A stretch of DNA of 63,670 bases, filler included, from Octopus bimaculoides (GCF_001194135.2; 3 parts of 3 records of this genome joined end to end with filler, not necessarily neighbours in it), one strand, 5' to 3'. Shown: positions 13,414-61,632, counted from the first letter of the whole stretch. A program made the numbers and translations. The notes: a model not told the origin generated them from the sequence alone.

Positions 13414-13516
<103 letters not shown>

Positions 13517-13534
13517 TCTATGTATGTATCATCA

Positions 13535-31551: not shown

Positions 31552-31830
31552 GAATTCATTGCTGTACTCATTTCCAACCCTCACCTTACTGGCCGCATCT
31601 CTGTACATGGCTCGCACAGCTCTCACTAGCCATTCTTCTATCCCAAGTTTCCTCATTGACCACCAGATAAGGGATCGGGGGACCCTGTCAAAGGCTTTCT
31701 CCATGTCAACGAAAGCCAGGTACAGAGGTTTATCCTTGGCTAGGTATTTCTCTTGCAACTGTCTCACTAGAAATAAGGCATCAGTAGTGCTTTTACCTGG
31801 CACGAACCCAAACTGCATCTCATCTAAATT
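31552..31830 (-). mobile_element. RTE RT N-terminal fragment
   Basis: QFGFVPGKSTTDALFLVRQLQEKYLAKDKPLYLAFVDMEKAFDRVPR, intact over this stretch. Confidence 0.93.
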
Positions 31831-34470: not shown

Positions 34471-35395
34471 AGACATTAAAATAATGAAACTGCTGGGGGG
34501 GGGGCACTATAAATGTTTTTCAGCTGATACTCCCTCACTTGTTTAGCAGAGTATGAACCATCATTGTCCATGATGCTAAATTCAGCTTGAGATATGTTAT
34601 TCTTATTTTATTTGTATGTCAGAATTAAAGATTGTGTTATCACCAATGATGAGCTGCTTCTATGGCAAAGTTATAATTCTTGGCAGAAATACTTTTAAAA
34701 TATTTATCAAGATCACATTAAGGAATAAAATACTTCACATAGTTTCTTGTTTTACTGGTTTCAATCAAGATGGGACACTGCCGTCAAGGACTTTAGTTGA
34801 TTATATACCTGCTCCCAATACTTATTTCTATCTGATATTTGTTTTATCAATCCCTATACGTCGTACTGTTAAGTTGAGATGTAAAGGGACACAAAATAAG
34901 CAGTAATGGTTTTTAAATTTATCTAAATACACAGTCACACACACATATATGTACACGCATATGGAGAGAGAGAGAGAGTAAACAAGCTTCTGTACAATTT
35001 TCATCTATCAGATTCAACTCCTGGGTATACCTGGGATAACTGATGAGATGAATCTAAACTAGAACTTGGAAAGAATCTAAAGCAGTGTTTACAACTTCTA
35101 ATCTGTAAATAATATGCATCAATTTTAAGACTCCTAGGATAAATAAATGGGGGAAAAAAATGACTCCATGTTATGAGTTTTCTTACAACTTTTTGATATT
35201 GTTTGCAGTATTAGTTATGTTCTACCATGATTCATTGTGTGACTTGTCTCGCCTCAGAAGCACACATTTCATCGACTAGCAAACATCAAATCAATGTGAC
35301 ACCTGCTTTGAAACAACAGAGCAAGAAATCTAATTCTTCTTAGCATAACATAGCCATTAACTCAAAATGGCTTTACTAGAGCATGATATTTATAT

Positions 35396-35499
<104 letters not shown>

Positions 35500-35636
35500 A
35501 CAGTGTACTGGTTGTAAATCTTGTTCTCAAAGAGTTTGAACAACTACCTCTGTATATGACAATCTTCCAAAATCAGTGGTTACTTGGTTTATTTGTCAGT
35601 TGTGTCTGAAAAAAGCCAGTTTTGTGTGTGCCTTAG

Positions 35637-35677
35637 CAACAGGACTTCCAGATAGTGATGATGGACTGAGAAGTGTG
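35637..35677 (+). CDS. Candidate small exon (x)TGLPDSDDGLRSV
   Basis: Acceptor tgtgtgccttag| (alternative caacag| 6 nt downstream), donor GTG|gtatgt, mostly A/T-ending codons; exits phase 0, so it does not join directly to 39555. Confidence 0.35.
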
Positions 35678-38600: not shown

Positions 38601-39554
38601 CTTATACTATTATGCCCCTTTCTAACTTCATGTTTAGTCCTTGTTCTATCTTGTGTTGAATGTCTCCAAGACGTTTTTTCCCCTGTTATAGCTTTTCTTT
38701 TAAATCCCAAAACAATAGAGTAGATTCTAACACAGAACATAAACTCATTTTTAAACATTCTATCATAACCCGAAATTATCTTTTTCTAACACCTCTCAGA
38801 ATTAAACTCTTAGTGTATTCTCTTCTACCGACTCATTTTTCACAATTAAAGCATAATTACTTATACGAAGGAAGATCATCTGTGCAAGCTGGAGTGTTTT
38901 ATTCTTTTACATAATTTTATATATATCTTAACACTTTCACTGTCAGTAGCCCCATCTACCAAATGCGTTGCTCCCTAAAGGTCTCTGTTAAAAGATATCT
39001 TCCAGCTGCAGCAATTTTCTTTCTGAGTAATTTTTTTTTATCTAAACAACAAAGCTTGATAGGCAGTAATTGCCCAACAGCAGACATTGTATCCTTAATG
39101 ATCACAAATTAACGGTCTAACCAGTGTTTTTAAAACCCATGTTTAACTGTTTTCCTTATAGGGAATTAACCCTACTATCAGTGAATGTGTTACTTATTGT
39201 TATAATTTTGGGGATTTTTCACCCACATCATAACCATTTATAAACTTGTATTAACAATATTCTCTGGTGAATTATAAACCATTTTCAGGGGTTCTGTGTT
39301 GTTTCCCCTCATTTTGCTTTGTCATTTTTAAACCCTTTTTTTCCTCTCTTTCATCATTGTAACAAACCTCCAAGAACTATTGTAAATTCTAGGTCAGCAA
39401 AAAAAGGCTACCATGGTTTCTTTTTTTTTTTTTTTGTAGTTTATTTTTTATATCATTACCCAATTCTCCTTTGTCCCCCTTTATTTTCATCATTGACAGT
39501 CAAACAACTCTCTTCTACTGAACCATTCTATTGTATTCATTTTATTATTTTCAG

Positions 39555-39647
39555 AGCTTGTTAGCCATAGAACTACTGAACTTGCACAAGCAAGAGACCG
39601 ACTTTCTGAAGAAATGGAGAGTAACCAACACACGCCATCAGCGACGG
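39555..39647 (+). CDS. 93-nt symmetric phase-1 exon (E)LVSHRTTELAQARDRLSEEMESNQHTPSAT(G/E)
   Basis: Acceptor cattttattattttcag|, donor ACGG|gtgtgt; 21 of 30 full codons end in A/T in this frame versus 12 of 31 in the also-open phase-0 frame. Confidence 0.7.
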
Positions 39648-40307
39648 GTGTGTAGACTTTGTGAACCTTGTCAACAGCATGTTTAACAAAGTATAATCTC
39701 TTTCAAAAAAGTTAATAATAATAATGATAATAATAATAATAATATTATGCATGCCATTGGTCAACTAATTTTTTTTTTTTTTTNNNNNNNNNNNNNNNNN
39801 NNNNNNNNNNNNNNNNNNNNNNNNNNNNNNNNNNNNNNNNNNNNNNNNNNNNNNNNNNNNNNNNNNNNNNNNNNNNNNNNNNNNNNNNNNNNNNNNNNNN
39901 NNNNNNNNNNNNNNNNNNNNNNNNNNNNNNNNNNNNNNNNNNNNNNNNNNNNNNNNNNNNNNNNNNNNNNNNNNNNNNNNNNNNNNNNNNNNNNNNNNNN
40001 NNNNNNNNNNNNNNNNNNNNNNNNNNNNNNNNNNNNNNNNNNNNNNNNNNNNNNNNNNNNNNNNNNNNNNNNNNNNNNNNNNNNNNNNNNNNNNNNNNNN
40101 NNNNNNNNNNNNNNNNNNNNNNNNNNNNNNNNNNNNNNNNNNNNNNNNNNNNNNNNNNNNNNNNNNNNNNNNNNNNNNNNNNNNNNNNNNNNNNNNNNNN
40201 NNNNNNNNNNNNNNNNNNNNNNNNNNNNNNNNNNNNNNNNNNNNNNNNNNNNNNNNNNNNNNNNNNNNNNNNNNNNNNNNNNNNNNNNNNNNNNNNNNNN
40301 NNNNNNN

Positions 40308-40346
<39 letters not shown>

Positions 40347-41415
40347 GGACCATACATATACATACGTATATGTTTCTTGATACAGTGTATAATTTAAATT
40401 CTAGATCTTTTGGATTAGTTTGAGTGTGTGTATGTATGTGAATGAAGACTATTTCCAGTCGTTCAAGCTAGTCTATTTCTACCTCATAGTAAAGATGGCT
40501 GTTCACCAACTCCAGTGTTCAAACTCATTCAAGGAAACAGATTTCACCTCACTGTACCATACTGCAAACTTTCAATTTTCGCATTTCGATAATTCATCAA
40601 ATTTGTAACACTCTGGAAGGGTGGGGAGGAAACAGAACAATGCAGAAGGTTGATAGAAAACCAGCCCTTCTTCTCATCTAAAAAAATTTAAATATGGCTA
40701 TATGTTTTTCGGCAGAGAACAGTGAAGTATTCTTCACATGCTGGTCTTTGGTCATTAATGTTTTCTTTTCATCTTGGCCTGTGACTTTTCAACATTTTTT
40801 ATCTTTTATTTTTAATTCTTGCACTAAAATCTTTATCTTTATTATTTGTTTGTCTATCTTTTTTTTATATATTAAAAATAAGATTGATTAAATTGGGTTG
40901 GAAATGCGTTTGTAAACATTGAGATTACAGCAGTTGGGTGGGCTACATTTGGAGAGGGATTTAGTGGGTTTCATCTGTGAGTTCTTTTTTTAAGAAAAAA
41001 AAGCATTATCTGGGTGTTTTATTGTGCAAATTTTAATGTATTCTTCAATCTGACAGACTGATTATATCAGTAACAAACTCTCTTGCTATTCATGTTTCTT
41101 ATTATGCAGATTTCATACTTTGGAGTATATTGGCAAAAATCTTCCTAAACTTATAAAGCTTTCTGTCTTAATCTTTAAAACTAAGCCAGATTTTGCTCTG
41201 AATTTTTCCACAGTATGTTCGTGTCATGAATATATTTTCAAGTTTTAATTTTCAAACTCATTTCCACTTTATAATTTTGATAAGGGCCATCTTAACGTAA
41301 ATTAAACTTCAAAGTAAGATTTTTAACAAATCCAAGTCAAGGGTTTTTTTCCCCTTTATATTTATTTTTGTATGTGTGTGTGTGTGTGGCCAAAAAATTT
41401 TGTGTAGCGTTGCAG

Positions 41416-41455
41416 AAAGTTCTAAGTCGGAGCATATAGACACTGTGTCAAGATG
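41416..41455 (+). CDS. Candidate 40-nt exon (E)SSKSEHIDTVSR(W), phase 1 to 2
   Basis: ttgcag| and TG|gtcagc; links 39647 to 43638 in frame. Confidence 0.4.
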
Positions 41456-42044
41456 GTCAGCAATGCCAGTTTACTTGGGCTTCTTGATTCCACTTGATCT
41501 TCCAAAACTCAAGTTTTTCAAGTTGGGCCTTCTAAAGCAACTGAGCAAAAGCATGTGTGTGTATGTATGCATATATGTACATATATATATGTGTGTCTGT
41601 GTCTGTGTGTGTATCTATCTATATGTGTAAATTTTTCAAAGTATAACAATATAGTATTATAATTTTTCAGTATATTTCAAATATTTGAGGTTCATCTTTT
41701 TTCTGATTTTCTTTTTTCTTTTCTTCTCTTTGGTTTTTTTCAACTTTAGCAATTTTTCTTCTATATCTCTGCCTTCCTCACTTCACTTCTATACTCCCTT
41801 TTTTATTCTTGCAGTATCACAAGACTTGATTCAAAATTTCTTTTTTCAAATTTTGTTAATGATATTTTGGTTTATATGATACTGTTTGTATATGATATAC
41901 ATTCAAAAATTAGAGTTGTCAGCTAGAGACCAAAATATACCTACTATACAAATTTACACTAGAAATTTTCAAATTTATTTATACATATATATATATTAGC
42001 TTTTATTATTATCATCAAACTATTATTATTGTTGTTGTTGTTAG

Positions 42045-42330
42045 GGAAGTGGTTTGGCGGAATCATTAGAACATTGACAAAATGCCTTGTGGTATTTAGT
42101 TATTGCTCATTGTATTCTGAGATCAAATCCTGCAGAGGTCAACTTTGCTTTTCATCCTATTGATGGGGATGGGGGTGAAACAAGAACCAGTTAAGTACTG
42201 GGGTTGATATGATCTACTGTTCCCTCTCCACCCAAAAATTTCTGGCCTTGTGCCTATGTAATTATTGTTGTTGTTATTATTATTATTATTATGATTATTA
42301 TTATTATTATTACTATTATTATTATTATTA
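42045..42330 (+). mobile_element. Family A SINE with (ATT)n tail
   Basis: Collinear with 1110-1322. Confidence 0.75.
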
Positions 42331-43637
42331 TCAGTAAGTTTAGACTTCAAATTTCATTGTAAATTTGAATTTTTTTCCATAATATTCTGCTCTCACCTGC
42401 TATTTTTATTTGAAGAATATTTTTTTCTTAAAACAACCAATATAATATTAAAAGTGATAATGACAGTTTTGAAAATGATAATGTTAACAAAATTTTTCTT
42501 CGGCTTCTAATTTTTTCCTTTTTTTTTNNNNNNNNNNNNNNNNNNNNNNNNNNNNNNNNNNNNNNNNNNNNNNNNNNNNNNNNNNNNNNNNNNNNNNNNN
42601 NNNNNNNNNNNNNNNNNNNNNNNNNNNNNNNNNNNNNNNNNNNNNNNNNNNNNNNNNNNNNNNNNNNNNNNNNNNNNNNNNNNNNNNNNNNNNNNNNNNN
42701 NNNNNNNNNNNNNNNNNNNNNNNNNNNNNNNNNNNNNNNNNNNNNNNNNNNNNNNNNNNNNNNNNNNNNNNNNNNNNNNNNNNNNNNNNNNNNNNNNNNN
42801 NNNNNNNNNNNNNNNNNNNNNNNNNNNNNNNNNNNNNNNNNNNNNNNNNNNNNNNNNNNNNNNNNNNNNNNNNNNNNNNNNNNNNNNNNNNNNNNNNNNN
42901 NNNNNNNNNNNNNNNNNNNNNNNNNNNNNNNNNNNNNCTAATTGACCTAGCTATTCCATATGAAGAAAAAAAAAAAATAACAGTAATTAAATATATATAA
43001 ATTTTTAAAAAGAGCAAAAAGAACTCCTTACTCATGGTGCTTGTGATGTTTTTCTGTTGGCTCTCTCCTTGAGGGACATTAAGATTCTTGGCTTTAAAGA
43101 ACATTAATTTTTTTTGTTGTTGATTTTTTTTTTTTTACTTCCTTATAAAGGGTGTAGTTACGGGGATTTTTATATTGTATGGAAAACTATAGTAGTTTTG
43201 AAATAATACCATGGTAGAACAGTATTTGTAGCTTTAACATGATAGCTGGGGGATACTTGTAGCTATGACTCGTAATAACATAAGGTAAGGACATTGTTAG
43301 TTATAGAGTTAACATTTGATTGGGTAACTAGTAACTATGGCTCCAGCAGTCCAGAGTAAGAAGACATTGAGCTGTCATAATTTTAATATTCTAGGACTTA
43401 AGTGGCTCCAAGTAAATTATTATCATTATTATTATTATTAATATTATTATTATTAGTAGTAGTAGTAATTTACATGTATGTATATGTATGAGTGTGGGTA
43501 AAGAAATTATTGTTAAAAATTTTAAAAAAAAAAGAAAAAAGATGTTACAAAGTTGTGGAGCCTCCCACTGCCTCATGGTCTGGTGTATAAAACTGTAACC
43601 CATCTGAAATACAAATCTTCCATGTTGTTTACTCTAG

Positions 43638-43668
43638 GGATTCACTAGAGATTGTAGATCCATTCTGA
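43638..43668 (+). CDS. Candidate last coding exon (W)DSLEIVDPF*
   Basis: Acceptor cttccatgttgtttactctag|; phase-2 entry; TGA at 43666-43668; AT-rich UTR-like sequence follows with AATAAA near 44758. Confidence 0.4.
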
Positions 43669-44301
43669 GGTATTTTTGTAAGAAAAACCACCATTTAACT
43701 TATTATTCCAATATCATGGATCCATATTTTGCTGCATTTCACCAAATTCTTCAGACAGCAAACCATAGTTTATATATATATATATATATATCCCCCTCAC
43801 ACAAGAGAATTGTTTAATCTACAGAGAAAAGGGCAAGAATACATATAGTATTCTGTGTTATTGATATATTATATAATCTTTATAACCAATAAGTCAAATG
43901 GGTGTTAATTGATCTATTTTTGAATGATATTTAAAAAACGTCTTTTAATAAATATATATGTATATATATATACATATATATACATATATATTTCTTTTCA
44001 TTTTTTTTCCTCTCCTACTATTTATCTTTCTATTATCTAATAAACTGCTACTTATTTGGAGCCCAAAGGGTTAAATGATAAATACCTGTGCAATTTTTTT
44101 GATCAGTTTGACATTCTCACCTGACTGAAGAGTTCTTATATAACATTGTTATATTTTATCGTTTCAAGCATAAATTGCCTTTTTACTAATCTCAAAGATT
44201 GTATGGACAAACTTTTCTCTGCCTACTCCTCACTTTATTTCTTTTTTTTTTTTTTTTTCTCTTTCCCTTCTCTCCTTGTGTGTGACACATCTCTCTTGAT
44301 C

Positions 44302-44375
<74 letters not shown>

Positions 44376-45186
44376 TCACACATATATATACATATACATA
44401 CTAGTTTGTGTGTTTATGTATGCATGTATGTGTATTTATATAGGTGTATATGTGTATACATAAATACACACACTCTGCACATTTGTGTGTGTATATATAT
44501 ATTTATGTATGTATATATGTATATACACATACACACACTTGCTCTCTATCTGTGTCTCTATCTTTCTATTTCTTAGACTTTCTCATGTCCTGCTAGGCAG
44601 CTTGGCTTAGCTTTGCCAAGTTCCACTGCAATGTTGCCTCATAATGCTGCATGCTTAACTATTGTTTTATTTTTTTTTTTTACATTTTTTCCTCCTCCTC
44701 CTTCTCCTTGTGTCTTTCCTTCTTCCATATACATGTTGTCATTTCATGTGTAATATGAATAAATTTGATGTGCCTTTTTGTATTGCTCTTAATATTATGT
44801 TTGTTTATTCTTAACATTAAACAAAGCAAAAAAAAAAATTGAACGAAAAGCAAAATCTTCCTGTTTAAGTTGATGATGTTGTAAGTTATTGTCTTGATAT
44901 ATATATATATTCTGTAATATATATAATATATATAAATATTTATATATATCTATATATATTTACTTTGGTTTACACCAAGAGCATCCATCATAGATTAATA
45001 ACTTAGTCATATTGTTACATACTGTTAAAATATAGATATTTAATTTAACTACATTTTTAAATGTATTTAATGTTTCTAATTTTCTTGTGTATTTATTGAT
45101 CTCATAGGGAAGGGACTGCTTTGTAACATGGCTTCCTTTAATATATTTCATCACTAAAAATTTTCCTATTCTGTTTAAAGCAAAAT

Positions 45187-45222
<36 letters not shown>

Positions 45223-45562
45223 ATTGAGAGAACGCTAACCATTTGCAATATGTACTAACATCTTCTCATCTCTCACTCTCTGAGTTTCACACAGCATTTA
45301 TATTTCCATATTTTTAATTCTTTCCATTCTAAATCTAATGAATCAAAAGTCATCTCTCAAGCTATTAACATTTAAAGTGCATCTTTCTTAACTCCATTAA
45401 TTCTTAAAAGTTTTCTTCCTTGATTGTTGCTTTGGTGTGAACCAATTTACTTGCATAAATCACATCTGATTCATAACTGGGTAAACACTAAACACATACA
45501 ACTGAATAACATAACCTTGGGTAAAACTCATTTAATACAAAAGCTGCTGCGTCTAATACACA

Positions 45563-45635
<73 letters not shown>

Positions 45636-46044
45636 ATATATGTGCATGTATATATATATAATATGTACATATATATGCATATATGTATTATAATAATTTT
45701 TTAATACTACTAAATAAATGGTGAATATTACTGCATGAAAAATGCAAAACTGATAAATTACCAGATAAGGATAAAAGCAATATGAGCAACTTAAAATGCA
45801 TGGATATTCACAATTGGCCACTTGTTACATAATGGATTTCAGAAGGAAGATAATGATGCCTGATCTCATGAATGATAATTAACTGAAGATTAATTTATCA
45901 TTAGCTTAAAAGAGTTCCATTTCTTCAAGGCTGCAAGAATGCATGCTGCCATTTTGGTCAATGGCCAAGCTCTGTGGGATGGACTTCAATCAAACCTGTT
46001 CTCTATAGAAATTAACTGTTATTTGTGAATGTGTGATTTTCCAG

Positions 46045-49000
46045 AGGCAGACATTGCAGATGGCCAAATGATAACTCATGACTACACACTTGACAGTTCC
46101 TTTGAAAGCCAACGGATTCCTGATGACTCTGAATTGCAGAGTGTTGAAGTAGAAGATATCTATTATGAGCGCTCCTTAACTCCATTGTTGGGAAGAGAAT
46201 CTGATATGGTATGGAGAAATGAATGCCAGCAGAGGGATAGGAAAAATTCTTATCTCTCTGAGAATTTCCAGGAACTTGACAGTGTGCGCAGTCATAATTA
46301 TCTCCCACAACTGAAGCATTTTCACAGAGAAACAGATGAGTTTTCTTCTACTCAATCCATGCTAATTGATTCCAGATATTCAATGTCTTCAAACTTGAAA
46401 GAGAAGCCTTTCAACCTAAATTCACACATTCATGATGAATCCTTACACGAAGAGGAATCAATCGTTTCACACGCGGAGACCTCCCATTCCATATCATCAA
46501 ACATATCGGATGATTATGATAACAGTTCCACGTCCTCCTGTATTACTGTTGTTGCTGCTGATACACCAGCTATCCAAAGTTCCTCTGTTGAACAACTTGA
46601 CCCAGTATTAGGCTCCTTTGAAACAAATTTAGCTCCAGAGAAGTGTTCAGAGATTGAAAATAGTTCCAATGATACACACATTCATTACAAAGCACCATCT
46701 TCACAGCAAATGAACAATTTCAGACCACCCATTTTTCCCTTTCCCCCTCATCCAACGTATTCTAATGCATATAACTATGGTGGAATGCCTTGGTATATGT
46801 CAGGTACAGGCAAAAGCTTCCCACATATGTACAACCAACACAAGAGTCTTCCAGGCATGTATAACTACAATAGAATGCCTTTTCACAAGCATTACTCAAA
46901 CAGAAATGCTGAAGACCCCTCTGACTTTGATAACATGTCTGAGTACTCGTGTGTCCTAGACAGAAATATTATGGACACACGTGACATAGGCAGCAAGTCT
47001 CGCTACTCAAGTGAGCAAGATATAAACTCACAGAGTTTGGGTGGATATAACCTAAAAAGAGGATCTCTGGAAACATTTGACATAGACAGGCAGTCTGTAG
47101 ATACTTTCAATGCAAAGAGGAAATCTCTTGACACTAGCCGTGACAATGTATCCCAAGATTCCTTTAACTCTGACTCTTCACATAGAAAGGTATCTGGTTG
47201 TGTGCAACATGCTCCAAGCGCATTCAGTTATGACAGTGACTCACTGGATATTTATAAGGATGATAGCATGAGACTTCTTGATACCTACGACATTGAGCCT
47301 TTGTCACCAGACTTGGATTGCTATAGCTTGACTTCTGATTTGTACGAACATGACAACATGCCATCCAATAGATATGATACCAATGAAATGAATTCTATCA
47401 GAATGAGCCTTAGTGCACGGGACAGTAATACAATTCTATCAGACACATATGACTCTGGTAGAATGACTCCAGATGTGTATGACTCACATAAAATGACAGC
47501 TAATGCAAATGACTCATGTAGAGTAACAGCTGAAGCATATGATTCGCATAAAATGATGGCTGATACATATGACACACATAGAATGACAGCTGATTTGTAC
47601 GACTCATGTAGAATAACAGCTGATTCATATGACTCTCGTAGAATGAAAGCTGATTTATGTGACTCTCGTAGAATGACAGCTGATTTGTATGACTCTCGTA
47701 GAATGACAGCTGATTTGTATGACTCTCGTAGAATGACAGGTGATTCATATGACTCTCGTAGAATGACAGCTGATTCATCTGACTTGCATAGAATGACAGC
47801 TGATTCATATGACTCACGTAGAATGAAAGCTGATTCATGTGACTCTCATAGAATGACAGCTGATTTGTATGACTCTCGTAGAATGACAGCTGATTCATAT
47901 GACTCTCGTAGAATGACAGCTGATTCATATGACTCTCGTAGAATGACAGCTGATTCATATGACTCACGTAGAATGACAGCTGATACATCTGGCTCACATA
48001 GAATGACATGTAACTCTCATAGATTGACAGCTAATGCATATGACTCTCAGAGAATAACAGCTGATACTTATAACTCAGGTACAATGACAGGTGATATGTA
48101 TGACTCACATACAATGACAGGTGACATGTATAACTCAAGTACAATGACAGCTGATACATATGACTTGTGTAGTGTGATATCTGATACATATGACTCCCAT
48201 CAAATAACAGCCAATAGATATAACCTCCATAGAACAACAGCTGACACATATGACTCTAGTAGAATAACAACTAATGCATATGACTCTAGTAGAATGACCA
48301 CTGATACAAATGACTATAATATTGTGTCGCATGATTCCTATGATTCTGGCAGACTGTCACCAGACACATATGACTGTCATAGTTTATCACAATATATGTA
48401 TGACTATGATAGACATTCACCAGATACATACAGCTTAGATCAAATGTCTGCTGATTCATGCTGTGAGGAAGAATATGATGAAGTCTTTTCCTCACAAAAT
48501 AATCCATTAGCTACAGACACTGCTCCAGACTTCTATTGTTCCAGAACCTCACCTGGATCATTTAAAGAAAACCCTGCACTTCTTCATAGTAATATTTACA
48601 AACCAAGGAGTTTCTTTAAAAAGTGTGACAACCAGCGGCCACCAGTTAAAAATATGTATAACATGTTGCCCTCCAGGGGCTATCACACACCTGTTGTTCC
48701 TAACAGAGGTTCAGTGTTCTACAGAAGATTTAATACTGGAAGCTGTTGTGATGACAGTGATGAAAGTGATGCTTTGTCACTTGAAAGTCTAATTAATGAT
48801 GATCCCAATGAGAGGAATAGTGACATAAATGGCACTGATGGTCTGTTTGTAAACAACCATGATTTAGGGTTATTTTCTGATCTGCAACGTAGACTTAGCC
48901 AGACAAAGGACAAGGGCATACCCAACTGTGATGACTTCATATACCCAACAAGTGCTAGGAATCAACAGTTTTCTAGTCAAAATGCTTTCAATGTTGATAA

Positions 49001-50858
49001 AACAATTCCTAGCAATTTCCCTACTGACCAGAATAATATGCTATGGAACAAACGTAATATTCCACTATATAGCAGCTCTTGTTACAATGATTACAATGCT
49101 GACCGCTGGACTGTAGAAATAGGTACCCATAACAGTGACCAGGTGTATCAACAGTCAAAAGGTTCTCATTTCCAGAATGACCACTTGAAGTGTTACAACT
49201 CAGAGAAGCCTGATTCCAAAAATAGCTGCCTATTGCCTTCTCGATCTGAAGACTCTATACAAAGTCTACAAAACATTGACAATTATGGCCCTATGTTACT
49301 CCCTCCCCCTTACAGTAGCCCTAAATCAAACTTATCCTTCAAAGGTTATGACAGGCAGTACCCTTATTCTAACAGGTTCAACAACCATTGCCCATACATG
49401 TTTGACCAACACTGTCCAACAATACCAAATTATAACAGTGAAGATGGTGATCACATGCCTTTTAATAGTTCTGACGAGAAAAGTTTGAATAGCAAAACTT
49501 TCAATCAATCAAGTAATCCAAGCTTCACTCATAAAAATTTCCATGATTTCTCAAAGAGCATGTCTACATTAGAATTTGATAACAGAAGTACAAGTTTTCC
49601 TCGACGTTCTACCAATGCAGGAACTTATAACTCCAGTCAGTCTTTAGATTTGCACCCTAGATATGAAAACAATCCCCCAATATTTGGGGCTTCTACAAAT
49701 GAAAGATTATTCAAGCCCCTTCAGAAGGCAAACTATGTGTACAATTGTTCCAGCCGTTCTTCAAGTCTGGCAAGATATCCCAGTAATGTTACACAAATGT
49801 CTGATTCTGATACCTCATATTCTAACATCTTGGATAGTAGTTGCTATACAGGTTTCAGAAGTAACAAAGTGCCTTATCTAAACTTACCATGTGGTCCGAA
49901 TCGGTTTGGCTTGCAAGAAATTCCTTTCTCTTTCCAAAGTTTTCCTCCTTTTGGTACCCGCACCTCCAGATCTGGTCTTAACAATCACTTCGGTAAGAAA
50001 CAAATTCTTTATGACTTCACTAAACCATTTTCTAACCAGTTTTTCTCTCTTGGAATGGTCTCAAATATGATGGATGAAAATTCTTTGAAGACCAAAGAAT
50101 TACTGAGTGGACCAGTAAAGGGTTCAGACAGTGTATGCTCACACAGAATTCCCCAAATGGATAACCATTTTTGTTATAAATTTCCATTTGATGATGATAT
50201 CTTGTCTAGGAATTCTTCAAGTAGGTATAAAGGCTGTTTAAAGAAAATACCTTCTGATATATCATTAGAACATGAACCTATTCAGATTCCATCTAGGCAA
50301 GAGGTATCTAAGTCATCTGTAACACCTGGGAATGGTAAACACTGTCATGCAGTGATGCAGCAGCTAAATCCTAAACAAACTTTCCCATTGACATATTCTG
50401 TTGGTTCTTTGTCTTTGTTGGATTTTGAAATATTCAGAGTAGAAGAAAAAGTAACTTTTGAAAGACCCAAATTGGAAAGCCTGTCTATTATGAGAGGACA
50501 GAAAACCCATTCTTTCACTGATGTGTCTTGTAGTTTTGATGCCCTTGATGGTCAAGCTGGTGGAAGCAGCTGTGATATTCCTATGGTAGATGTTCAAGCA
50601 CTTGCAGTACCACCATGCACAATAGAAGATGTAACTTACCCATGTCTTTGTGATAAGGTTAATGTTAATGATGCTACTACAGCTTCTCAAGTCAAAGTAA
50701 TACCTTTAGAAGAATCAGGTTTGTTCACACAAGAATTTGAAATAGCTCCACCCAAAGACGAATATATGTCCATCCTACATGGTTGTGCTACCAAGTCCAA
50801 TCAAGATGTGTTTCTACATGAAGGTCTAAGTGTCAGCAAAGGTAATTATGGATTTTAA
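46045..50858 (+). CDS. 4.8-kb terminal coding exon, about 1600 aa, S/D/N/Y-rich, probably disordered, with a decapeptide repeat array; host possibly a giant ankyrin
   Basis: Uninterrupted 1609-codon ORF in AT-rich DNA; in-frame TGA immediately before the listed ATG (46026-46028), so the phase-1 acceptor gtgattttccag| at 46044 is the likelier entry; stop TAA at 50856-50858. Confidence 0.88.
47442..48452 (+). repeat. 30-bp coding tandem repeat, about 34 units, consensus D-S/T-Y-D-S-R-R-M-T-A
   Basis: Core unit atgacagctgattcatatgactctcgtaga; near-identical at 47620-47990, degenerate on both flanks, frame preserved throughout. Confidence 0.97.
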
Positions 50859-52904
50859 GCTGTAGTACCTCACCAAACCATTGACAGAAACCATAAAACA
50901 TTACAAAGAACACCCAAGCCACTTGCTAATATTCATATCCATAAATGTAGAAAAATAACTCATTCTTTGCAAGTGCTTTAGATGTACTGCTACAGAATTC
51001 AGGTAATTAAATGTCTTGCTCAAGTAGGGTTATAATCATAGCATCAATGTTCTGATATTTTGTACAAAATATTTGGCCACTACCTCATGCATCTGACATC
51101 AATAGTATCATGAAGACATTTTTTGGATAACTGCTTATGATGTGGGTTACATCTTCAGTATTAATTTCACAGTCTGTGTCAGTTATCACATCATAATCTT
51201 TTACTTGCATCCCAATTGTTTTTCTGCATCAAGAATTTTCTTATTTCTTGTTCTTGGATTGACTGCAGATGCATATTCTTCAAAGTGAAATCTAACTTGC
51301 CAGATGTTGGCCCAAGATTAACTACTTTTGTTATCTACATTACTGTCACTCTAACATTTTCTGACTTCATAGCTGTACATCACCTTTTGCATATTAGCAA
51401 AAAGCCTTTTCTTTGATGGTCTATTGTGATACAGCTGCACAACTTCTGATATGTAGCCTTGATCATCAATCAAGAAATGCTTTACAAGCAACTCCTTTCC
51501 AATTTTCATGTTGCTATTTGCCTCGTGGATATACACTTGTTCCATTGATGCACTTCAACCCTTGGTGCTTAATAGATAGTGTCAAAGATTTATGATGTAA
51601 CATTCTAAGGCTGTTTTAATAGATGTTAAGCCTCTAACTCCTTATTTCCCTATTAGGTAGTATCAGTCAGTATCAGTATTAATGCGAAATGCCTGGTATA
51701 TGTTGTTCATTTTCTGGGGTTAACATCAAATCCCCAGATCTCATCAAGCATCCAAATGATTGTCTCAAATGCTGGTATTGGTACTGAAACAACACACATT
51801 GTGGAGAACTGATTTATTCTATTCAGGGAGCTCTAAAGATCATATTTTTTAACTGGGTATTTTATTTCCTTGTTACACATCCTTTGTAACACATGCTATC
51901 ATAAGTATGTATTTTCAACCATCCCTAGGTACCTGTAACATAGCTTATCAGATACCATTGAATAGTTAGACCGTTGACAAATGTTGCTAGATTGGAATGT
52001 AGTTTGCTCTTCTTTTACAGTAAGATAGGAATATTTATTCTACTCCAATTTTTTTTTTATATATCAGTCAAGAACGTCATAACATGGTCAAGGCTCTTCT
52101 TCATACCATTCATAATTGTATGAATGAACATATGTATGAGTGTGTGTGTATATATGTATGTATAGGTATGTATGGGTGTGGATGCTTGATGACTGTATCC
52201 ATTGTATGTGTAGATAAATGTATATGTATATTTATACATGTGTGTGTGTATGCCTCACCTTTTTGAATATACCTCAGTATCATAAATTTCTAATTATACT
52301 TTAAATGCACCCCATTATCATTTTCTTATTGCACCCTTACCTTCGAAAATTTACCCAGATTATAATCTTCTCACTCAACTTCAACTTCAACTTCAACCTT
52401 ATCATATTTTTGCCTCAGTCATCAAATTTGTATGGTACTCCACTTTCATTAATATAACTCTATTTCATATATATACTCCATCTCTATACTGATATCAACC
52501 CTAACCTCTGCATACAAATCCATCACATTATACATACCCACATGAATGGAACAGACGTATAATAGGATGGATTTGCATGAGTGTATGTGTGTGTGTGAAA
52601 ATGAGAAAAGTATTGTTTTGTGTGTTTTTTTGAGTGCAGCAAGAGACAGCTCTGCTGTGTTTATGTGTATATGTGTATGTATGTGTCCAGTGAACAGCAG
52701 AGAGAGAGAGAGAGAGGTGTGTCTCACAAAATTAGATTATGCAAAAATTGTATACTTGTTGTCAGTTAAGTCAGGTGTTCAAAGTTTCAATTGTATTAGG
52801 TTCACAAGATCTAAACTAATCTATTCTCTGAGTATTTTGTTGCTATAATCTAACATTCATGGTTTCTGTGCAGATGTTATTAAAAACATATATAATTACA
52901 ACAG

Positions 52905-53885
52905 AGTAAGTTGATCAAAAATTTCAAGGCAGGTATAAACTGTTAGTTAGTACCTCATTGGAGCTCCTTTGGCAATAATGCCTGACTGAATACTTCATAG
53001 CATAGGTGAAAGTAACCTTTGACTCCATTTGATTACTGTGATGTGAGTTAGCAATCTTTTTAACCATACACCATAGATTCTCTATGATATTTAGGCCAGG
53101 TGACTTACTTGGCTGAGTAAATACATTGAAGGGATGATCAACAAAAGAAACAGTAGTCATTTGGGCACTGTATATAGGTACCATATCCTAATGGAACAGA
53201 AATCCACATCACCAAATAGCCTGCTGGTCGATGGAAGCTTGAAGTGTTCCAAGATATTTTAGTTGATTGCTACATTGACTGTAACTCTGCGGAAATACAG
53301 TGATTTAGTTCTTGCACGTGACATGTCTGTGATAACTTGAAGCTGGACTTCAAACAGTTGGGTTCTGTGCTTCTCCAGCCCTCCTCTTAGCTCTGTAGCC
53401 GTTGTTTCCAAATAAGATACAAAAGTTACTCTCATCGAGGAAACAACACTTTGTACCACTACTAAACACTCCATACCTACTTTTCTTTGGGCCCAAATCA
53501 ACTAACTGCCTCTGATACTATTTATTGTTGAATTGAGGCTTAGTGTTGGCTACCATGCAAATGTTCTCCATCTCTTGAAGCCATCTTGTGTCAGGAGTCC
53601 CTTAATGTTCTAATTCTCCACCCTTATAGATCTCCTGCACATTGTCTAATAGGCTCTTTTCCATGGTTCTCTCAAGGCTGCAGTTGTTCCACTTGATGGG
53701 GCTCCTCTTTCTACCACACTTTGTTCATTCAGATGATATTTCAATGAAATGTTTGATACAGAACTCTGAGAACGGCCAGTTTTTTCAGTGATAACCATCT
53801 GCGTCTTCTCCTCTTTGTAGAAAGTGTCAATGGTGGCCTTTTGGATGACTATTAAATCAGAAGACTTGCCCATGACTGCACCAAC
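52905..53885 (-). mobile_element. Decayed Tc1-family transposon
   Basis: MGKSSDLIVIQKATIDTFYKEEKTQMVITEKTGRSQSSVS (ATG 53873), VLF-DESNFCILFGNNG...AGEAQNPNCLKSS, PSKSPGLNIIENLW, IAKGAPMRY*; frameshifted. Confidence 0.88.
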
Positions 53886-56073
53886 AGCATTTACTGCAAA
53901 ATATATGGCAAGGCTAGTTAAGAAGTTTGCTTCTGAACTACATGGTTTTGGGTTCAGTCCCATTGCATGGTATCCTCGGCAAGTATCTTCTACCATAGTG
54001 CAAAGTTAACGAAAACTTGAAAGTAGTCATAAATTGAAAGACGCCCATTATATATACACACATACACACACAGATATGTGTATATGTGTGCTTGCTCACA
54101 CTTGCACTTCTCCAAAACTCATTTAGCCGACATTGTTGCCATTTACTGTCAACAAGTCGGCGACTGACTTTTCACCCTCAAAAATGTGTGCATTAAGGGA
54201 AGATCTTTTACATAAGAAGCTGGTATGGGTTAGTGACAGAAAGCACATCCAACTATAAAAAGAATACCTCAATAATATGTCTTGTATTGGAAAACAGAAC
54301 AGACATAAAGACAAACAAGCAGAGTGAACACACAAACACATGCACAAATACACATACATGTACAAACACACACACACACACACACATGCACAAGCATATA
54401 CATACCCAAACACATACTTGCCCAAACACATACTTGCCCCACATCTCTTATGCATAAGAACTATAAACTTTTTTGAATAGTCATTGATATTCTAATTTTC
54501 TGAGATACACATGGGTATGTAAGTACACAGCAAGACACAAATGCAGTCTGGAGTTGAAGGTATGAAAGTAACTTTTGTGTTTGAATTGTGGTGGTCATAG
54601 TGTTGTTAATGGTGGTGGTGGTGGTGGTAGCAGCTCCAGCAGTAGTAGTAGTAGTAATAATGACAGCACCAATACTAGTAGTGATATCAGCACCAGTATC
54701 TATTGTACTTGAAAAGGACCCTTGTCAGTCATCCTGTCCTCTTTGGTGAAGTGGACATGCTTTACAAAGATTTACTGTTCAAACACCTGTAACAAGTTTA
54801 CTCAATGTGTTATTCTCTAGGCACAGATATAAGAAAGGGATGAAAGCCATTTCATGCAGAGTACAGGGGAAAAGGAATGAGTCTGTTCGACTGGTCACTA
54901 CATAAGAACTGAAATATATTTAAATAAAATGTGTTTTGATTTTTCTGTTGTTGGCATTACCATGTCATTTAAATAGATGCTTCAATTCATTGTTATAGTG
55001 TTTCAATGCCAAAATATTGATAGACTTTCCTTTATTAAGCAGCTTCTGTCAAGCACATGTAGTTCATCTTCAAAGAAGACTGAATGCCTATTGGGCTTCA
55101 AAGAAAGCTCAGTAGGCATTTAGTCTGTTGACTCCTTAGCCTCCTTGTTGATTTTTTTCTCATTAGTTCTAAATAATTATGGATTTACTTCACGTCCTAC
55201 ATTCCGCATCAAGTCCTTCTGGTTTGTAAGAGTTACATTTGTATTTATATCCACCAGTATTTGCTGCAAAATATTGTTATATACTGAAGCTTGTTCTTGT
55301 ATGGTTAGGATTCATGCTTTTTGTGGATAGGAAACTAGCTTGTTGAATACTTTAACAATATGGATGAATGCTTTCAGGGAAATTCTTGTACTGCTTTTCA
55401 AAATATTACAGTAGTGTTTCGCTTATTTAGACTTATTTGTATGTACATGAATTTGGCAATACAATACAATATCCTTTTGTCCTAAATGTACAATAATTAT
55501 CCCTTTGTCTCAAGTGCCCTACAATGCATCTTTGTCCTCAGGGTACAGCAATACAATTTGCATTTACCCATAACAGCTTTGCCAGAAATACATTTCATCA
55601 CCTATCAATCAGTTATTTAGTATGATTACATGCAAATTATGTAGAAATACAAGTGGACAGCATTAATATGAAGGGTCCATACCATAGCATGGTCTGTAAC
55701 ATGGGGAGGAATTGTATTGAAGCAAGGATCTAACCAACAGCACTGGCTAGTGATTGTAGGATAAACATTTCTCTGGATCAGATCCTAACAAACAGCACCA
55801 GACTGGAATGATTTTTTGATGAATCAGATAGAGCTTAGACAGCTAGGACTCTGCTAAGCCAAAGATTATAACCACACATCTCATGTCAACAAAATCTCTT
55901 GGTCTCTGCCTCTCAGATATTCCAATTTTAGCAATGGTTTATTACAAAGAATTTCATGGCTGTTTTATTTATANNNNNNNNNNNNNNNNNNNNNNNNNNN
56001 NNNNNNNNNNNNNNNNNNNNNNNNNNNNNNNNNNNNNNNNNNNNNNNNNNNNNNNNNNNNNNNNNNNNNNNNN

Positions 56074-56113
<40 letters not shown>

Positions 56114-57865
56114 GAGAGAGAGAAAGAAAGAAAGAAAGAAATGTGTGTATGAATTTAGTGATGACCAAATGTAGTTTCTGTGTATCAATATCTTGTTTGC
56201 ATATTTATTTAATGTTAAACCCAATTTGTCCTTAGAGTCAAGTTTCTAATATGGTAACAAAAAGAAATACAAATCTTCCCATGAAGTACATTGCTAGTCT
56301 AGTATTGATAATTTCTCTTGAAAGATTTGCTAACTGTTCTTAAACTAGGAACACTAAAGTATGTTGAATTAAATATTTTGCTCTCTCTTAAATAGAGGAC
56401 ATAAGATATCTAAAGCTGTCATACAATTTATTGGCTTGTTGGGTATCACTGAATTTTTTGTCTTCTTGTACTGTAACTAATATAAATGCCAGTTTAGGGA
56501 ATAACATTATGCTCAAAGTTACACCATTGATAGGATTTGAAATTGGCAGTGTTAACAAAATGCTTGCCCGTTGCTCACTGATCCTAGAGTGTACAGTATT
56601 TCACTTTCAACAAGAATTAAGTGTTATGGTCGTAGATCTAGCATAGTATTAATTATAGAATCTGAACTATCAGTAAATTGAGGGTTAGTACAAAAATTGT
56701 TTTTTAATAGTTATTGTACCATTTAAGTGAAAATGCCAAGATGTAATTCACTGCCATGTCATATTGGCATTCAGTCTAAAATAAGGAGGACATCATCATA
56801 TGTTGTACTTCTTCAGAAAGATTTACAGAATTAATATGAAGCTGACAGAAAACTTTGTTTTCTAGTGTGGTAGTTTTTTCTGATAAGGTCAACAATCAGA
56901 AAACAATGTTTGTCATTACTGGTGATAAACCATCTCAGATTCAGACATATAATTTATCTTTAATCTGACACTGCATAAGTTTTGTAAAGTGAAACAAGGC
57001 ATTTCTAATATTCAGTTGATTGTTACCAGTCATGTTTTGATGCCAATCAGTCTAGCTCTTCCAAATTTATAGATCAGCCTACCTTCCTGTCTTTGATTTA
57101 GACATCATGTATCTAAGACTAAGTAATCTAATGTGTCATTCCTTTTTTTTTTAAGGATGCTTCTAAGATATGATTTGAGAAAGCTATGGTTACCATTTCT
57201 AGCAAGTCAGGTAGAAATGACAGCCATAGAGACTCTTGTCTTTGGTTCATGTTTTGCTGATAAGGTCCCTGATTCAGCAATTTTCCATTAGAGTTACAGT
57301 AAGGAAACTGGAGATCAAATGAATTCAATTAAATTTCTTCAGGGTCTTTTTTAATAATTTCACTCTTTTAGCTACATTCCTTTTGTTTCTAAATTGTGGG
57401 ACCAGCATTTGAAACAATAATAAATAATAGGCAGTTTATTTAGGTAGGCTCATTGCTGATTTGTAATTTTGTCACTTAATATCTCATAGATATATCTTAT
57501 CTATTGCTGACTATCTAATGGCATCAAACTTCACAATACCTTGGCATAATTAATCATCCTATCTTTTTATACATCTAGAACTACATTATTCAGTTGGTTC
57601 TTCAACTTCTGTTTAAAACAATAATATGTGGTCTGAGGGCAAGATGGCTGCTATTTCTAGCTTCTCAAGTTACTACTGGACAGCTTTTTGGTTAACTCCT
57701 ATTTTAACATAGTTCTGGCCTGTGTCAATGACAGAGTTGGGATGGGCAGGCTGATGTGAAGATATATAAAGTTGTAAGCTTATCTCTCATTCAAACTCAT
57801 GAACACAAGACAAAGATCAAAACATGAAAAAACCCCAGTGGGAAATATTAGAAAATGAGACTGTG

Positions 57866-57897
<32 letters not shown>

Positions 57898-58363
57898 AGC
57901 AGTGTCTAGCCATAATATTTACAGAACACAACATACACATTCACACACACTTATATAAATATTAGACATAGATGATGTAGTCATGTATATTTACTTACAT
58001 AAAACTCTAAAACATGTATTAAGTACTTTCTCTTCGATTTGTACATCATAAATGTACATTAAAATAACATTGTAGAGTGTGTGTGTGTGTGAGTGATATG
58101 TAAGGTAAACATGATTACATATCCAAACTAAGGTTTAGTTCATTTGACCTTTTAGTTGACTGCACATGTCAGTAGACTGAGAGCTGAAAAGAACAACAGA
58201 AGAAACTTTGGTGTTTGTATATGTAACCTGTGTGCCTAACATTTGATAAATACATGTCTGACTCTATATACTTATAACACAGGGATATATTGAGCACTCA
58301 CATGACTGTGTACCACAAAATGTATGAATGTGTGTGTGTGTATGAATAGCTGTTGCTTATATG

Positions 58364-58899
58364 CAGTGTGTCCCCAAAAAACTGACATCATTTTGTTGTC
58401 TAATAACATAGCGACTTCTTGCTCAAATGATCTCAAATTTTAACAAAATGTGTAAAATCTAAGTTCGGATTGGGCATACCAGTGATAAGGACAATGTGCT
58501 GTTGAAGTGGCCCCCACATCCACCTGACTTGATACCTTGTGATTTTTTTCTATGGGGCTATACAAAAGGACTGGTCTATATCTCATCTCTTCCTACATGC
58601 CTAGAGGAACTCAAGTAGAAAATCACTGAGGTGCTAGAGAATGTTACACAAGACATGCTACAGCATGTTTGGCAGGAGCTGGACTACCGACTTGATTTGT
58701 GTTATGTCACAGGCGGTGCACATATTGAACATTTGTGAAATCAGTTAGAAGATCTACATCCCTCTAAATTTCTTGTTCAAATTTCGATAATTAAATCTTT
58801 TATTGTTCAACATGAAGCCTATTGAATTTCGTTTACTTTGGACTTGTAATTACTCAGATATTAACATTTCAAATGATGTCAATTTTGGAGGACACCCTG
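58364..58899 (+). mobile_element. Internally deleted Tc1/mariner element with both TIRs
   Basis: cagtgtgtccccaaaaaactgacatcatt versus reverse complement of aatgatgtcaattttggaggacaccctg; TA on the right; residual WPPHPPDL.PCDFFLWGY.K...ELDYRLD...GGAHIEHL*. Confidence 0.88.
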
Positions 58900-59702
58900 T
58901 ATATTATAGGCTAATATCATTGGATAATTACTATCTATATGTATAAATGATATAACAACCACCAGTAATGTTGCAGTGTTCTGCAAAAAATAGTAAAGAA
59001 ATTATCACTGACCATACACAGAGACCAGTGAATGGCATTAGATACATTGATGGAAGCTACTCTCCACTGAGACAGATGACTTCCTGTTAGCAATCAGGGT
59101 GGAAAAATGGGATGAGGTGAATTAAGAAATTTGTTGAGGATTCTTCAGTCTGTTTAGGAAAACTGAAGTTGCTTCTTTCCAACTCTGTTGCACCACTTCT
59201 TTTCACACTTATTTATTGCTATTCTAACTTCTCATCATTCTTCTCAATGTGATCTAACACTTTCTCAATTATGCAATCTCTATATGCAAACTAATGATCT
59301 CTTATTGCTCAACTTTGGTTGTTTTCTGTATTTCCAACTTATTACTCAGCAAATGTAGTTAAATTATATTTTGTTTTGTTTACAGTTTCCCATTATGCAT
59401 ATACACTGATATGTGTGTATGTTGGCAAATTTTATTTTGTGTGCATGGGTGTATGTATGTATGTATGTATGTATGTGTGTGTATATATACACACACATAC
59501 ATACAAAGCATTCACCCATGATCCATAAATCACATACATCCTTGATATCTGGTGGTATTTATGTGTCTTCTATTGTCCATCCATTACAGTGTCTTTCTCA
59601 CTTCAACTCTGATTAGCTTATCTCTCTGGTCTCTTTCGGTTTGGATTATTGGCTTATCATTTTTCAGCCATTAGTAACCTTTCAGTAATTTTTGCTTTAC
59701 AG

Positions 59703-61632
59703 GCCGTTGGAAACGTGCCAATGCTATGAAAAAAAGAAAACACAAAAAAAAATCACCCAGTGGTGCACAGATAGAACGTGAGGCTGCGAGAGTAAAATCC
59801 CCTGGAGTAGAGAATAAGGTAGGAGGTGAAGTTTTCAATACCCCTCCTACAGAAAAGACTGATGTGGAAGAATATGAAAAGGTTTTGGAGGATGGTACTG
59901 TGTACCATGTTAAACGAATCCGAACACATTCACTGTCTCGTGTTCAGAGAAAAATTGTTTTAGAAGATGGTACTGAAAAAATGGTTGAGGAAAACATTGA
60001 TATACCTGGAACAGAGAGTATTGACAGTATTGAGACTTTTGAACAGCCACCTCATTCTATAAGTGTGATTGAAAAAGTAACAGAAGAACTTCCTTCTGGT
60101 AAGGTGGTAGAGCGCAAGGTGCAGAATGTTCGAATGGTGCACAATATCAAGACAAAGCACAAACACATTGACCCAGACCAGACTATCAAATTTCAGGAAT
60201 ATGAAATCAATGAGGTTATTCCTGGTACAGAAACTTGCTTTTACATTGATGATGAGTCTACAAGAGTGACTGATGATGAGTCTACAAGAGTGACTGATGA
60301 TGAGTCTACAAGAGTGACTGATGATGAGTCTACAAGAGTGACTGATGATGAGAGTGAGGCTACCAATAGAACTACTCAGAAGCCTCAGATACCTGTTGAC
60401 AAAAATCTATATCGTGTAGATTTACCATTTGAGCTGGAACGCTTTTACCATGTTGATCAAGATAGGCAGCAAAAAGAACATAGTCCTCTTAACCATGTTA
60501 AAGTAACTGATGGTCAAATGGTCCAAGGAACTGTTGAATTGCATACTGATCAATATAACCAGGAAAAGATTGAGAAACCAACCACCAAAGATATCAGACG
60601 TATTGAGCTATCACATGAAGATCCATTCCAAGATAATAATATCAAATCTGATCAAGTTGACAACCTACCTCTTGAAACAGTCATGCGTAAAGATATTCAA
60701 AATGTTGAAATGTCAGTTGGTCAAGATCGTGTTCATTTGTCAGTGGATTCAGATGATGTACATAAAGATCTAACAGCTGCTCAAAATGTCAGACGATCTG
60801 TAGGTGGAGGTGTTTATCATGTTGACCAGCCTGTTGCTCTGGAAACTTTGCACCGTGTTGAGAAACCTCCCTTTCAAAATGGAGAATATCCTGTCAATCA
60901 ATCAGTTGATAGCATTGAACCAGTTGATGCCAACATTTCTTATAGTCAACAGATTCCATCTGATCAAGATTATAACATTGGAAATCTATCTGCTCCAGAT
61001 ATTCCACATGTGGAAATGTCAAAAGGTGAAGATACTTTTGAATATCGTGATCTGCCACAAACTGGTGAAGAGCTGCCAGTTACTAAAGTTACCAAACCGA
61101 CTGGTCCATTTGGTGTCTACCATGTTGATCTTCCTGTAGATCTAGAACAATTACATCGTGTTGACCCACCTTCTCGTCCAGTCAGCTCTCAAGATATTGA
61201 CAAATCACTTACCGAAGCTGACATCCCATCAACTGAAGGCTTCTCGGAAGGTATTGAACACAGTATTGGAGAATATCATACCACACCTGTTGATGTTGTT
61301 CGTGGTCAAGGTCACCAGCTACCTGTAGAGCCACTCACTCGTAAAGATATTCATGTTGTTGAGTCATCTGTTGATCACATTGATCAACAAGTCCCTCTTC
61401 CTCATGCTCAAAATGTCAGACGATCTGTAGGTGGAGGTGTTTATCATGTTGACCAGCCTGTTGCTCTGGAAACTTTGCACCGTGTTGAGAAACCTTCTTT
61501 TCAAAATGGAGAGTATCCTGTCAATCAATCAGTTGACAGCATTGAACCAGTTGATGCCAACATTTCTTATAGTCAACAAATTCCGTCTGATCAAGATTAT
61601 AACATTGGAAATCTATCTACTCCAGATATTCA
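59703..61632 (+). CDS. Large coding exon (at least 1.9 kb, truncated by gap), internally repetitive; possible ankyrin C-terminal or giant exon
   Basis: Acceptor taatttttgctttacag|, phase-1 entry, (G)RWKRANAMKKRKHKKK; open to the gap; DVEEYEKVLEDGTVYHVKRIRTHSLSRVQRK and VTEELPSGKVVERKV resemble ankyrin tail motifs (from memory, unverified). Confidence 0.85.
60248..60355 (+). repeat. 24-bp coding tandem repeat (DDESTRVT) x4 plus partial
   Basis: gatgatgagtctacaagagtgact repeated identically four times. Confidence 0.97.

Follow-up and report, generated by a model that had tools for sequence, protein, structure and literature searches.

Exons of a probable giant ankyrin tail in Octopus bimaculoides, annotated in part as 'titin-like'

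A 63,670-nucleotide window of DNA from Octopus bimaculoides was analysed over positions 31552 to 61632, and this piece probably holds the part of a giant ankyrin gene that lies 3′ of the death domain (DD). Judged from sequence, the gene would contribute three visible exons, all on the plus strand: a 93-nucleotide exon 1, a 4,797-nucleotide exon b and the start of a giant exon c, with every visible boundary in phase 1. Exon c would open with a beta-rich module of about 150 amino acids and lead into a tail of 7,487-7,707 amino acids that ends in a conserved ankyrin C-terminal motif. The kind of gene is expected; what is new is most likely the cephalopod case, together with a public annotation that splits the gene and names its tail 'titin-like'. 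The candidate exons and the elements within them are given here, with a slash marking a splice junction.

39555 to 39647, plus strand: exon 1, 93 nucleotides, symmetric (phase 1-1), encoding LVSHRTTELAQARDRLSEEMESNQHTPSAT plus one leftover G
46045 to 50841, plus strand: long exon b, 4,797 nucleotides (3 x 1,599), with phase-1 acceptor ttttccag/AG and phase-1 donor AAAG/GTAATT
47446 to 48315, plus strand: tandem array within b, about 29 copies of a 30-nucleotide unit encoding the 10-amino-acid repeat YDSRRMTADS and its variants
50842 to 50858, plus strand: read-through codons of b, (G)NYGF and a TAA stop, which apply only when the b donor is skipped
59703 to 61632, plus strand: start of long exon c, with phase-1 acceptor ctttacag/GC and a reading frame that runs past the end of the piece
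59825 to 60274, plus strand: ankyrin-tail module of about 150 amino acids, EEYEKVLEDGTV...VRMVH...EYEINEVIPGTE, predicted to be all-beta
60247 to 60352, plus strand: perfect 24-nucleotide repeat, 4.4 copies, encoding DDESTRVT
60778 to 61632, plus strand: tandem units of 627 nucleotides (209 amino acids), 97% identical across their overlap

Two very long plus-strand open reading frames (ORFs) are present in the piece. The first, ORF b, occupies 46029-50858 (1,609 codons), and the second, ORF c, is open from 59678 and spans more than 651 codons before the piece ends. Because stop triplets make up 6.2% of the DNA, both frames are too long to be explained by chance, with log10 P values of about -45 for b and about -18 for c.

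By its sequence, exon c is the 5′ end of LOC106881226, a gene of the same species, with the first methionine codon at 59726 and about 7,000 more residues expected beyond the piece. An exhaustive protein search with c yields a 7,658-residue protein (P0003), whose residues 1-381 are identical to c, and about 40 further proteins whose similarity to c is confined to its residues ~45-220. P0003 is XP_014787059.1, described as 'titin-like isoform X6', and LOC106881226 has at least 19 isoforms of 7,487-7,707 amino acids. Word-indexed searches, run with c alone and with a composite of exon 1, the module, the N-terminus of b and a short peptide termed a (see below), gave no match. This index missed P0003 despite its 381 residues of identity with c, and therefore its negative results are weak. 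No paper that we found mentions LOC106881226 or an octopus giant ankyrin. As for the name of the annotated gene, the immunoglobulin and fibronectin-III arrays of a titin were not found; a Pfam scan at E-values up to 1 reports no domain at all in either b or the in-window part of c.

The annotated isoforms differ from one another within c. Specifically, X18 and X19 begin at the methionine codon at 61016, and X18 (P0050) agrees with the window there at 201 of 205 residues. Isoforms X2-X17 lack exactly one 627-nucleotide unit, and GT...AG pairs that could delimit such a unit are present at 60804-61430 and 60810-61436. The missing unit could reflect splicing inside the exon, a difference in copy number or a duplication in the assembly. 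The idea that c derives from a species other than that of P0003 was ruled out: the mismatch past residue 431 corresponds to the unit skipped in X2-X17, and X18 matches. A single residue near 61619 also differs, threonine in the window against alanine in RefSeq.

The link to ankyrins comes from proteins in which the same tail follows recognisable ankyrin domains. Protein P0025 carries UPA (UPA_2) and Death domains, and its first 364 amino acids match the ZU5-ZU5-UPA-DD structure of human ankyrin-2 (4d8o, E = 1e-102). Protein P0011 of Arion vulgaris, described as a 'Death domain-containing protein', likewise carries the module. In both proteins the death domain and the module are parts of one polypeptide, with the module on the C-terminal side. 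When P0003 is compared with each of these by composition-corrected BLASTP, its module region aligns with residues 1097-1236 of P0025 (P0003 residues 30-172, E = 3e-19) and with Arion P0011 (residues 53-193, E = 4e-21). The last ~75 residues of P0003 form a second conserved element, the C-terminal motif (...MMKKEIHKKTY...PEELRESMQQIIDQFM...EDDV), which aligns with residues 1444-1507 of P0025 (P0003 residues 7583-7645, E = 9e-14) and again with Arion P0011 (residues 7582-7658, E = 1e-14). Module and motif occur in the same order in all three proteins, separated by about 200 residues in the gastropod proteins versus about 7,400 in the octopus protein. Thus, the octopus tail is homologous to, and collinear with, the C-terminal region of ZU5-UPA-DD proteins, and because both ends of P0003 match the tails of ankyrin-domain proteins, its identity as an ankyrin is supported by tail homology.

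The composition of the tail points the same way. Ankyrin long exons have a signature of about 25% serine plus glutamate, and more than 55% for serine, glutamate, threonine, aspartate, lysine and proline together (Jegla et al. 2016, PMC5135030). The corresponding values for P0003 are 24.6% and 55.6%. In protostomes the long exons lie downstream of the death domain, two of them in Aplysia, and an origin of ankyrin long exons in the bilaterian ancestor has been proposed (PMC5135030). An earlier reading of this DNA, made from the sequence only, had proposed the 3′ region of a giant-ankyrin-type gene, and the homology of both the start of c and the RefSeq C-terminus to mollusc ankyrin tails supports this. 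Searched as peptides, the exons named in that reading fared unequally: c leads to P0003 and its ankyrin-tail relatives, and exon 1, a and b lead to no homologue. When all homologues were compared with the piece by tblastn, nothing was found outside c.

On the basis of modelling, the module at the start of c is apparently a folded unit of invertebrate ankyrin tails that has so far gone undescribed. An alignment of 29 sequences (A1) yields an AlphaFold2 model with a mean predicted local distance difference test score of 93.6 and a predicted template modelling score of 0.72. The predicted structure is elongated, with eight long strands arranged in successive hairpins. Its fold has no significant match in the PDB, where the best query-normalised template modelling score is 0.25, and the module corresponds to no Pfam family. 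Similarly, a profile of the module searched against PDB sequences, including full-length human ankyrin-1, returns no ankyrin. The module may bear some likeness to the extreme C-terminus of AnkB and AnkG, which serves as a lead only. One module homologue of 2,706 amino acids, P0017, contains 20 matching stretches.

Exon 1 is probably a genuine exon, as its sequence features suggest. Its boundaries can be read directly (ttttcag/AG...ACGG/gtgtgt). Splice sites were ranked against all GT and AG sites of the piece with a crude matrix, which puts the donor of exon 1 in the 99.6th percentile and its acceptor in the 97.3rd. A log-odds score of codon usage was derived by contrasting b and c with the non-coding DNA of the piece, and coding windows average 12.2 on this scale. 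Exon 1 scores 15.3, a value that few open 30-codon windows elsewhere attain (top 0.3%). Moreover, in a scan of both strands the maximal segment 39551-39649 is the best unique coding-like plus-strand segment outside b and c, and it coincides with the AG and GT boundaries of exon 1.

If the donor of exon 1 is left unused, translation reads through to end in ...SATGV and a stop. A short isoform from A. vulgaris, P0058 (A0A0B7BJ62), ends in ...SDTGV, and longer isoforms continue as ...SDTEDKDG. This pair of endings hints at a common phase-1 G/GTGT boundary; the peptides that flank it are not significantly similar. A likeness between exon 1 and ankyrin tails noticed by eye ('IAEVATRL / LAQARDRL') was dropped, its local alignment being at the level of shuffled sequences.

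Exon b encodes a product rich in serine, aspartate, asparagine and tyrosine that is apparently disordered. Its internal array is resolved by Tandem Repeats Finder, at a period of 30, into 18.8 copies at 83% match and 10.3 more diverged copies. The 4.8-kilobase exon had been described as terminal. The ORF and its phase-1 acceptor are as reported, but a consensus phase-1 donor at 50841/50842, five codons ahead of the stop (...AGC AAA G/GT AAT TAT GGA TTT TAA), argues against b being simply terminal. When b is spliced to 59703, the joined sequence reads ...SVSK-G-RWKRANAMKK, in frame. The placement of these splice sites was compared with that in a control set of 222 ORFs of at least 40 codons on both strands of the piece. 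A phase-1 acceptor equal to that of b falls within the first ten codons in 17 of the 222, an equal phase-1 donor falls within the last ten codons in two, and no control ORF has both. From these features, b looks like an in-frame cassette exon that leads into c at least as well as it looks like a terminal exon. Because b, like exon 1, is bounded by phase 1 on both sides and has a length divisible by three, its inclusion or skipping keeps the reading frame.

The exon had also been called lineage-specific. Indeed, no relative of b is detectable, and a word-indexed protein search returns only P0001, an annotated protein within b itself, and a low-complexity bacterial match. That search used the index that missed P0003 for c, which limits the claim accordingly. 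Exact look-ups of ORF b, P0001, P0003, P0015 and nine alternative methionine starts of b gave zero matches.

Two other invertebrate loci place these exons in context: L002, positions 1-13684 of a 13.7-kilobase Logan contig, and L001, positions 1-21482 taken from a 335-kilobase contig of the European Nucleotide Archive (ENA). L002 contains three large tandem ORFs: first one with glutamate-rich repeats (957 codons or more), then the module ORF and lastly one of 1,153 codons. The third of these (ORF3) is homologous to residues 4061-4271 of P0003 (E = 4.5e-12). Flanking all three are phase-1 splice sites, cag/ for the acceptor and G/GTA for the donor. In L001, the first ORF is homologous to the stretch of P0011 and P0025 between death domain and module, and the module ORF is next. 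Third, beginning about 7 kilobases past the module ORF and overrunning the end of the locus, is a called gene of 2,224 residues. All boundaries in L001 are again in phase 1. The position of b is that of the large exon that immediately precedes the module exon in both loci. This comparison indicates that the common phase stems from a series of phase 1-1 exons conserved among ankyrin tails, and from no special three-way switch.

Many of the short module-bearing 'proteins' in databases have hydrophobic N-termini. We had considered these as membrane-anchored isoforms resembling small ankyrins and rejected the idea: in L001 the hydrophobic segment is the translated polypyrimidine tract before the acceptor. 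These N-termini are artefacts of ORF calling.

A three-way switch is what the sequence-only reading had proposed. In that model, the phase-1 donor at 39647 picks among three alternative C-termini, encoded by c, by b (stop at 50858) or by a pair of mini-exons forming route a (stop at 43668):

41416 to 41455, plus strand: mini-exon a1, 40 nucleotides, not symmetric and shifting the frame; unsupported
43638 to 43668, plus strand: mini-exon a2, with a TGA stop and then GAG/gtattt; unsupported

The coordinates and frames on which the model was built are correct. The G left over from exon 1 completes a codon in frame at 41416 (GAA), 46045 (GAG) and 59703 (GGC), and the translation of 41416-41455 joined to 43638-43668, ESSKSEHIDTVSRWDSLEIVDPF followed by a stop, was reproduced exactly. 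The model can also draw on Drosophila, where the C-terminal tails of Ank2-L and Ank2-XL are alternatives to each other (PMC6703079), and on the codon usage of the joined a peptide, which is coding-like and falls in the top 0.8% of open 23-codon windows. Nevertheless, we regard it as very unlikely. Exon c is no terminus, since a tail of about 7,700 amino acids begins with it, and the stop of b is preceded by a strong in-phase donor. Route a fares worst as a real C-terminus. The acceptor of a1 reaches only the 68th percentile, its donor (ATG/gtcagc) has C at +3, and a1 is asymmetric, unlike all other exons here or in L001 and L002. No polyadenylation hexamer (AATAAA or ATTAAA) lies within 279 nucleotides past the stop of a2, the nearest AATAAA being 279 nucleotides downstream. 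Neither mini-exon has a homologue or an annotation, and the pair is not beyond chance, having been chosen post hoc among many short open segments.

Several results weigh against a single ankyrin gene that runs from exon 1 through b into c. No exon for ankyrin repeats (ANK), ZU5, UPA or DD is found in the 8 kilobases from 31552 to 39554, either among stop-to-stop ORFs or by tblastn with P0025 and P0011, as the sequence-only reading had already remarked for ankyrin-repeat, ZU5 and death-domain exons. No homologue of exon 1 was found, and its peptide aligns with the tails of Arion, Mytilus and P0025 no better than shuffled sequences do. Nothing significant emerges when b is compared with ankyrin tails, with the ORFs of L001 and L002 or with P0003. 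The composition of b (18.7% serine plus glutamate; 44.3% for the six residues) is below the ankyrin long-exon signature, and compatibility of phase arises by chance alone at one in three junctions. Finally, public annotation joins none of these exons. All 15 of the RefSeq isoforms of LOC106881226 that were examined begin inside c, at the methionine codon at 59726 or at 61016, with no upstream coding exon and no junction to exon 1 or b. The genome's own annotation places a separate gene inside b, encoding a single-exon protein of 1,196 amino acids (P0001) that starts from the 14th methionine.

The RefSeq isoforms fit a gene that consists of the tail only. Here, c and everything beyond it would be transcribed alone, whether through gene fission or through a promoter located in the b-c interval, and would yield a protein of about 7,700 amino acids that lacks membrane- and spectrin-binding domains. 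Exon 1 and b would then be part of the gene upstream, b being its terminal exon. The stop codon of b, with ATTAAA at 51006, 148 nucleotides on, agrees with this arrangement. Against this, the frame of c stays open 5′ of the first methionine codon, back to a strong phase-1 acceptor, and the consensus phase-1 donor of b would be pointless in a terminal exon. In addition, module and death domain share one polypeptide in P0025 and in Arion P0011. The missing link to upstream exons may itself be weak evidence, as messages longer than 23 kilobases would be poorly covered at their 5′ ends. Taken together, we consider a tail-only gene unlikely. A particular form of it would be a fission of the ankyrin tail in cephalopods, such that a free tail of about 7,700 amino acids, with the undescribed all-beta module at its start, is transcribed separately without membrane- or spectrin-binding domains, and b supplies the new C-terminus of a truncated ankyrin. 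This version is rather more doubtful.

The annotation of P0001 invites a different alternative, in which b is a lineage-specific gene in its own right, without introns, that sits inside a long ankyrin intron and is translated from an ATG of its own. An ATG is indeed the very first codon of ORF b past the upstream stop, and b is without homology to any ankyrin tail. This ATG, however, has a poor start context, with T at -3. Moreover, a phase-1 acceptor and a phase-1 donor lie within five codons of the ends of the ORF with a multiple of three nucleotides between them, and a spliced large exon occupies the matching position in L001 and L002. These features make a nested gene quite unlikely in our estimation.

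Under the reading that we favour, a giant ankyrin gene with exon 1, b and c in its tail, the likely products are exon 1-b-c and exon 1-c, both of which would bear giant tails. Truncated forms that end in ...SATGV or ...KGNYGF are possible when the donor of exon 1 or of b, respectively, is not used. Splicing would join exon 1, b and c to each other and to exons further 5′ that encode the ANK, ZU5, UPA and DD portions. By analogy with other giant ankyrins, the long and largely disordered tail could then reach out from the membrane-spectrin adaptor core and organise axonal and synaptic microtubules.

The remainder of the piece is AT-rich (G+C of about 30-40%) with many microsatellites, and it is interrupted by three assembly gaps:

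39784 to 40307, no strand: assembly gap in the putative intron from exon 1 to a1 or b, with poly-T and (AT)n at its flanks
42528 to 42937, no strand: assembly gap in a putative intron, with poly-T at its flanks
55974 to 56073, no strand: assembly gap in the putative intron between b and c, with (AT)n after the gap

All three gaps lie between proposed exons, and therefore none is crossed by a reading frame. It is possible that small exons are concealed within them or that contigs were mis-joined there.

Two stretches on the minus strand resemble mobile elements. At 31552-31863, truncated by the start of the piece, is a reverse transcriptase fragment (Pfam RVT_1, E = 1.2e-8) that is probably the remnant of a retroelement of the long interspersed nuclear element (LINE) type in an intron. 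Broken DDE transposase ORFs occupy 52927-54005, within the putative intron between b and c. A DDE_3 match at 52927-53187 (E = 3e-4) fails the Pfam cut-off, and motifs like those of Tc1/mariner elements are recognisable by eye; the sequence suggests a decayed DNA transposon. On the plus strand, an open 60-codon segment at 34271-34450 ranks next for coding-like codon usage (score 17.0). Neither Pfam nor the set of ankyrin tails offers a match to this segment, and it could be a further small exon or the remnant of a repeat. An open, low-complexity segment at 54590-54697, rich in glycine, serine and asparagine, scores as coding-like on both strands and is most likely a simple repeat, not an exon.

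The closest known systems are the giant ankyrins of the molluscs Aplysia californica and Lottia gigantea, which, like the octopus tail, are rich in serine and glutamate and which have long exons 3′ of the death domain (PMC5135030). In Aplysia there are two such exons in tandem, not homologous to each other and measuring 7,569 and at least 6,560 base pairs, an arrangement that recalls b and c when compared by description (PMC5135030). The octopus tail is far longer than those of Aplysia and Lottia (7,487-7,707 amino acids from c, plus 1,599 with b), and b differs in its composition and in its 10-amino-acid repeat of tyrosine, aspartate, serine and arginine. Cephalopods were not included in the survey that described these genes (PMC5135030).

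Drosophila Ank2 yields several giant isoforms from repeat-containing L and XL exons of 5,132 and 27,804 base pairs, likewise downstream of the death domain. Its tail is similar to that of octopus in overall size, and the likeness is one of architecture, with no similarity of sequence expected. Whereas the L and XL exons provide alternative C-terminal tails (PMC6703079), octopus b is apparently a cassette that precedes c, such that the canonical C-terminus is kept at the end of the tail. Vertebrate ANK2 and ANK3 each make canonical isoforms and, when a giant exon is included, giant neuronal ones (440- and 480-kilodalton ankyrin-B and ankyrin-G), which carry an extended and mostly disordered segment. 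Unlike in protostomes, the vertebrate giant exon follows UPA and precedes the death domain (PMC5135030). LOC106881226 in RefSeq is the same locus as c, under a name ('titin-like' or 'uncharacterized protein') and a gene boundary that ignore its homology to ankyrin tails.

If the reading that we favour is true, then the octopus tail, at about 7,700 amino acids, or about 9,300 with b, would rival Drosophila Ank2-XL. Giant ankyrins organise axon initial segments, axon calibre and the stability of synapses in flies, worms and vertebrates, and cephalopods possess the most elaborate nervous systems among invertebrates. The value of the finding is that it would correct an annotation, extend a conserved exon-phase architecture and define a module. 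Specifically, LOC106881226 and the 1,196-amino-acid model in b would probably belong merged into an ankyrin gene. The symmetric run of phase-1 exons would explain how huge exons can be gained, lost or alternatively included with the reading frame intact, and the beta-rich module at the start of c may offer a defined handle on the binding partners of invertebrate ankyrin tails.

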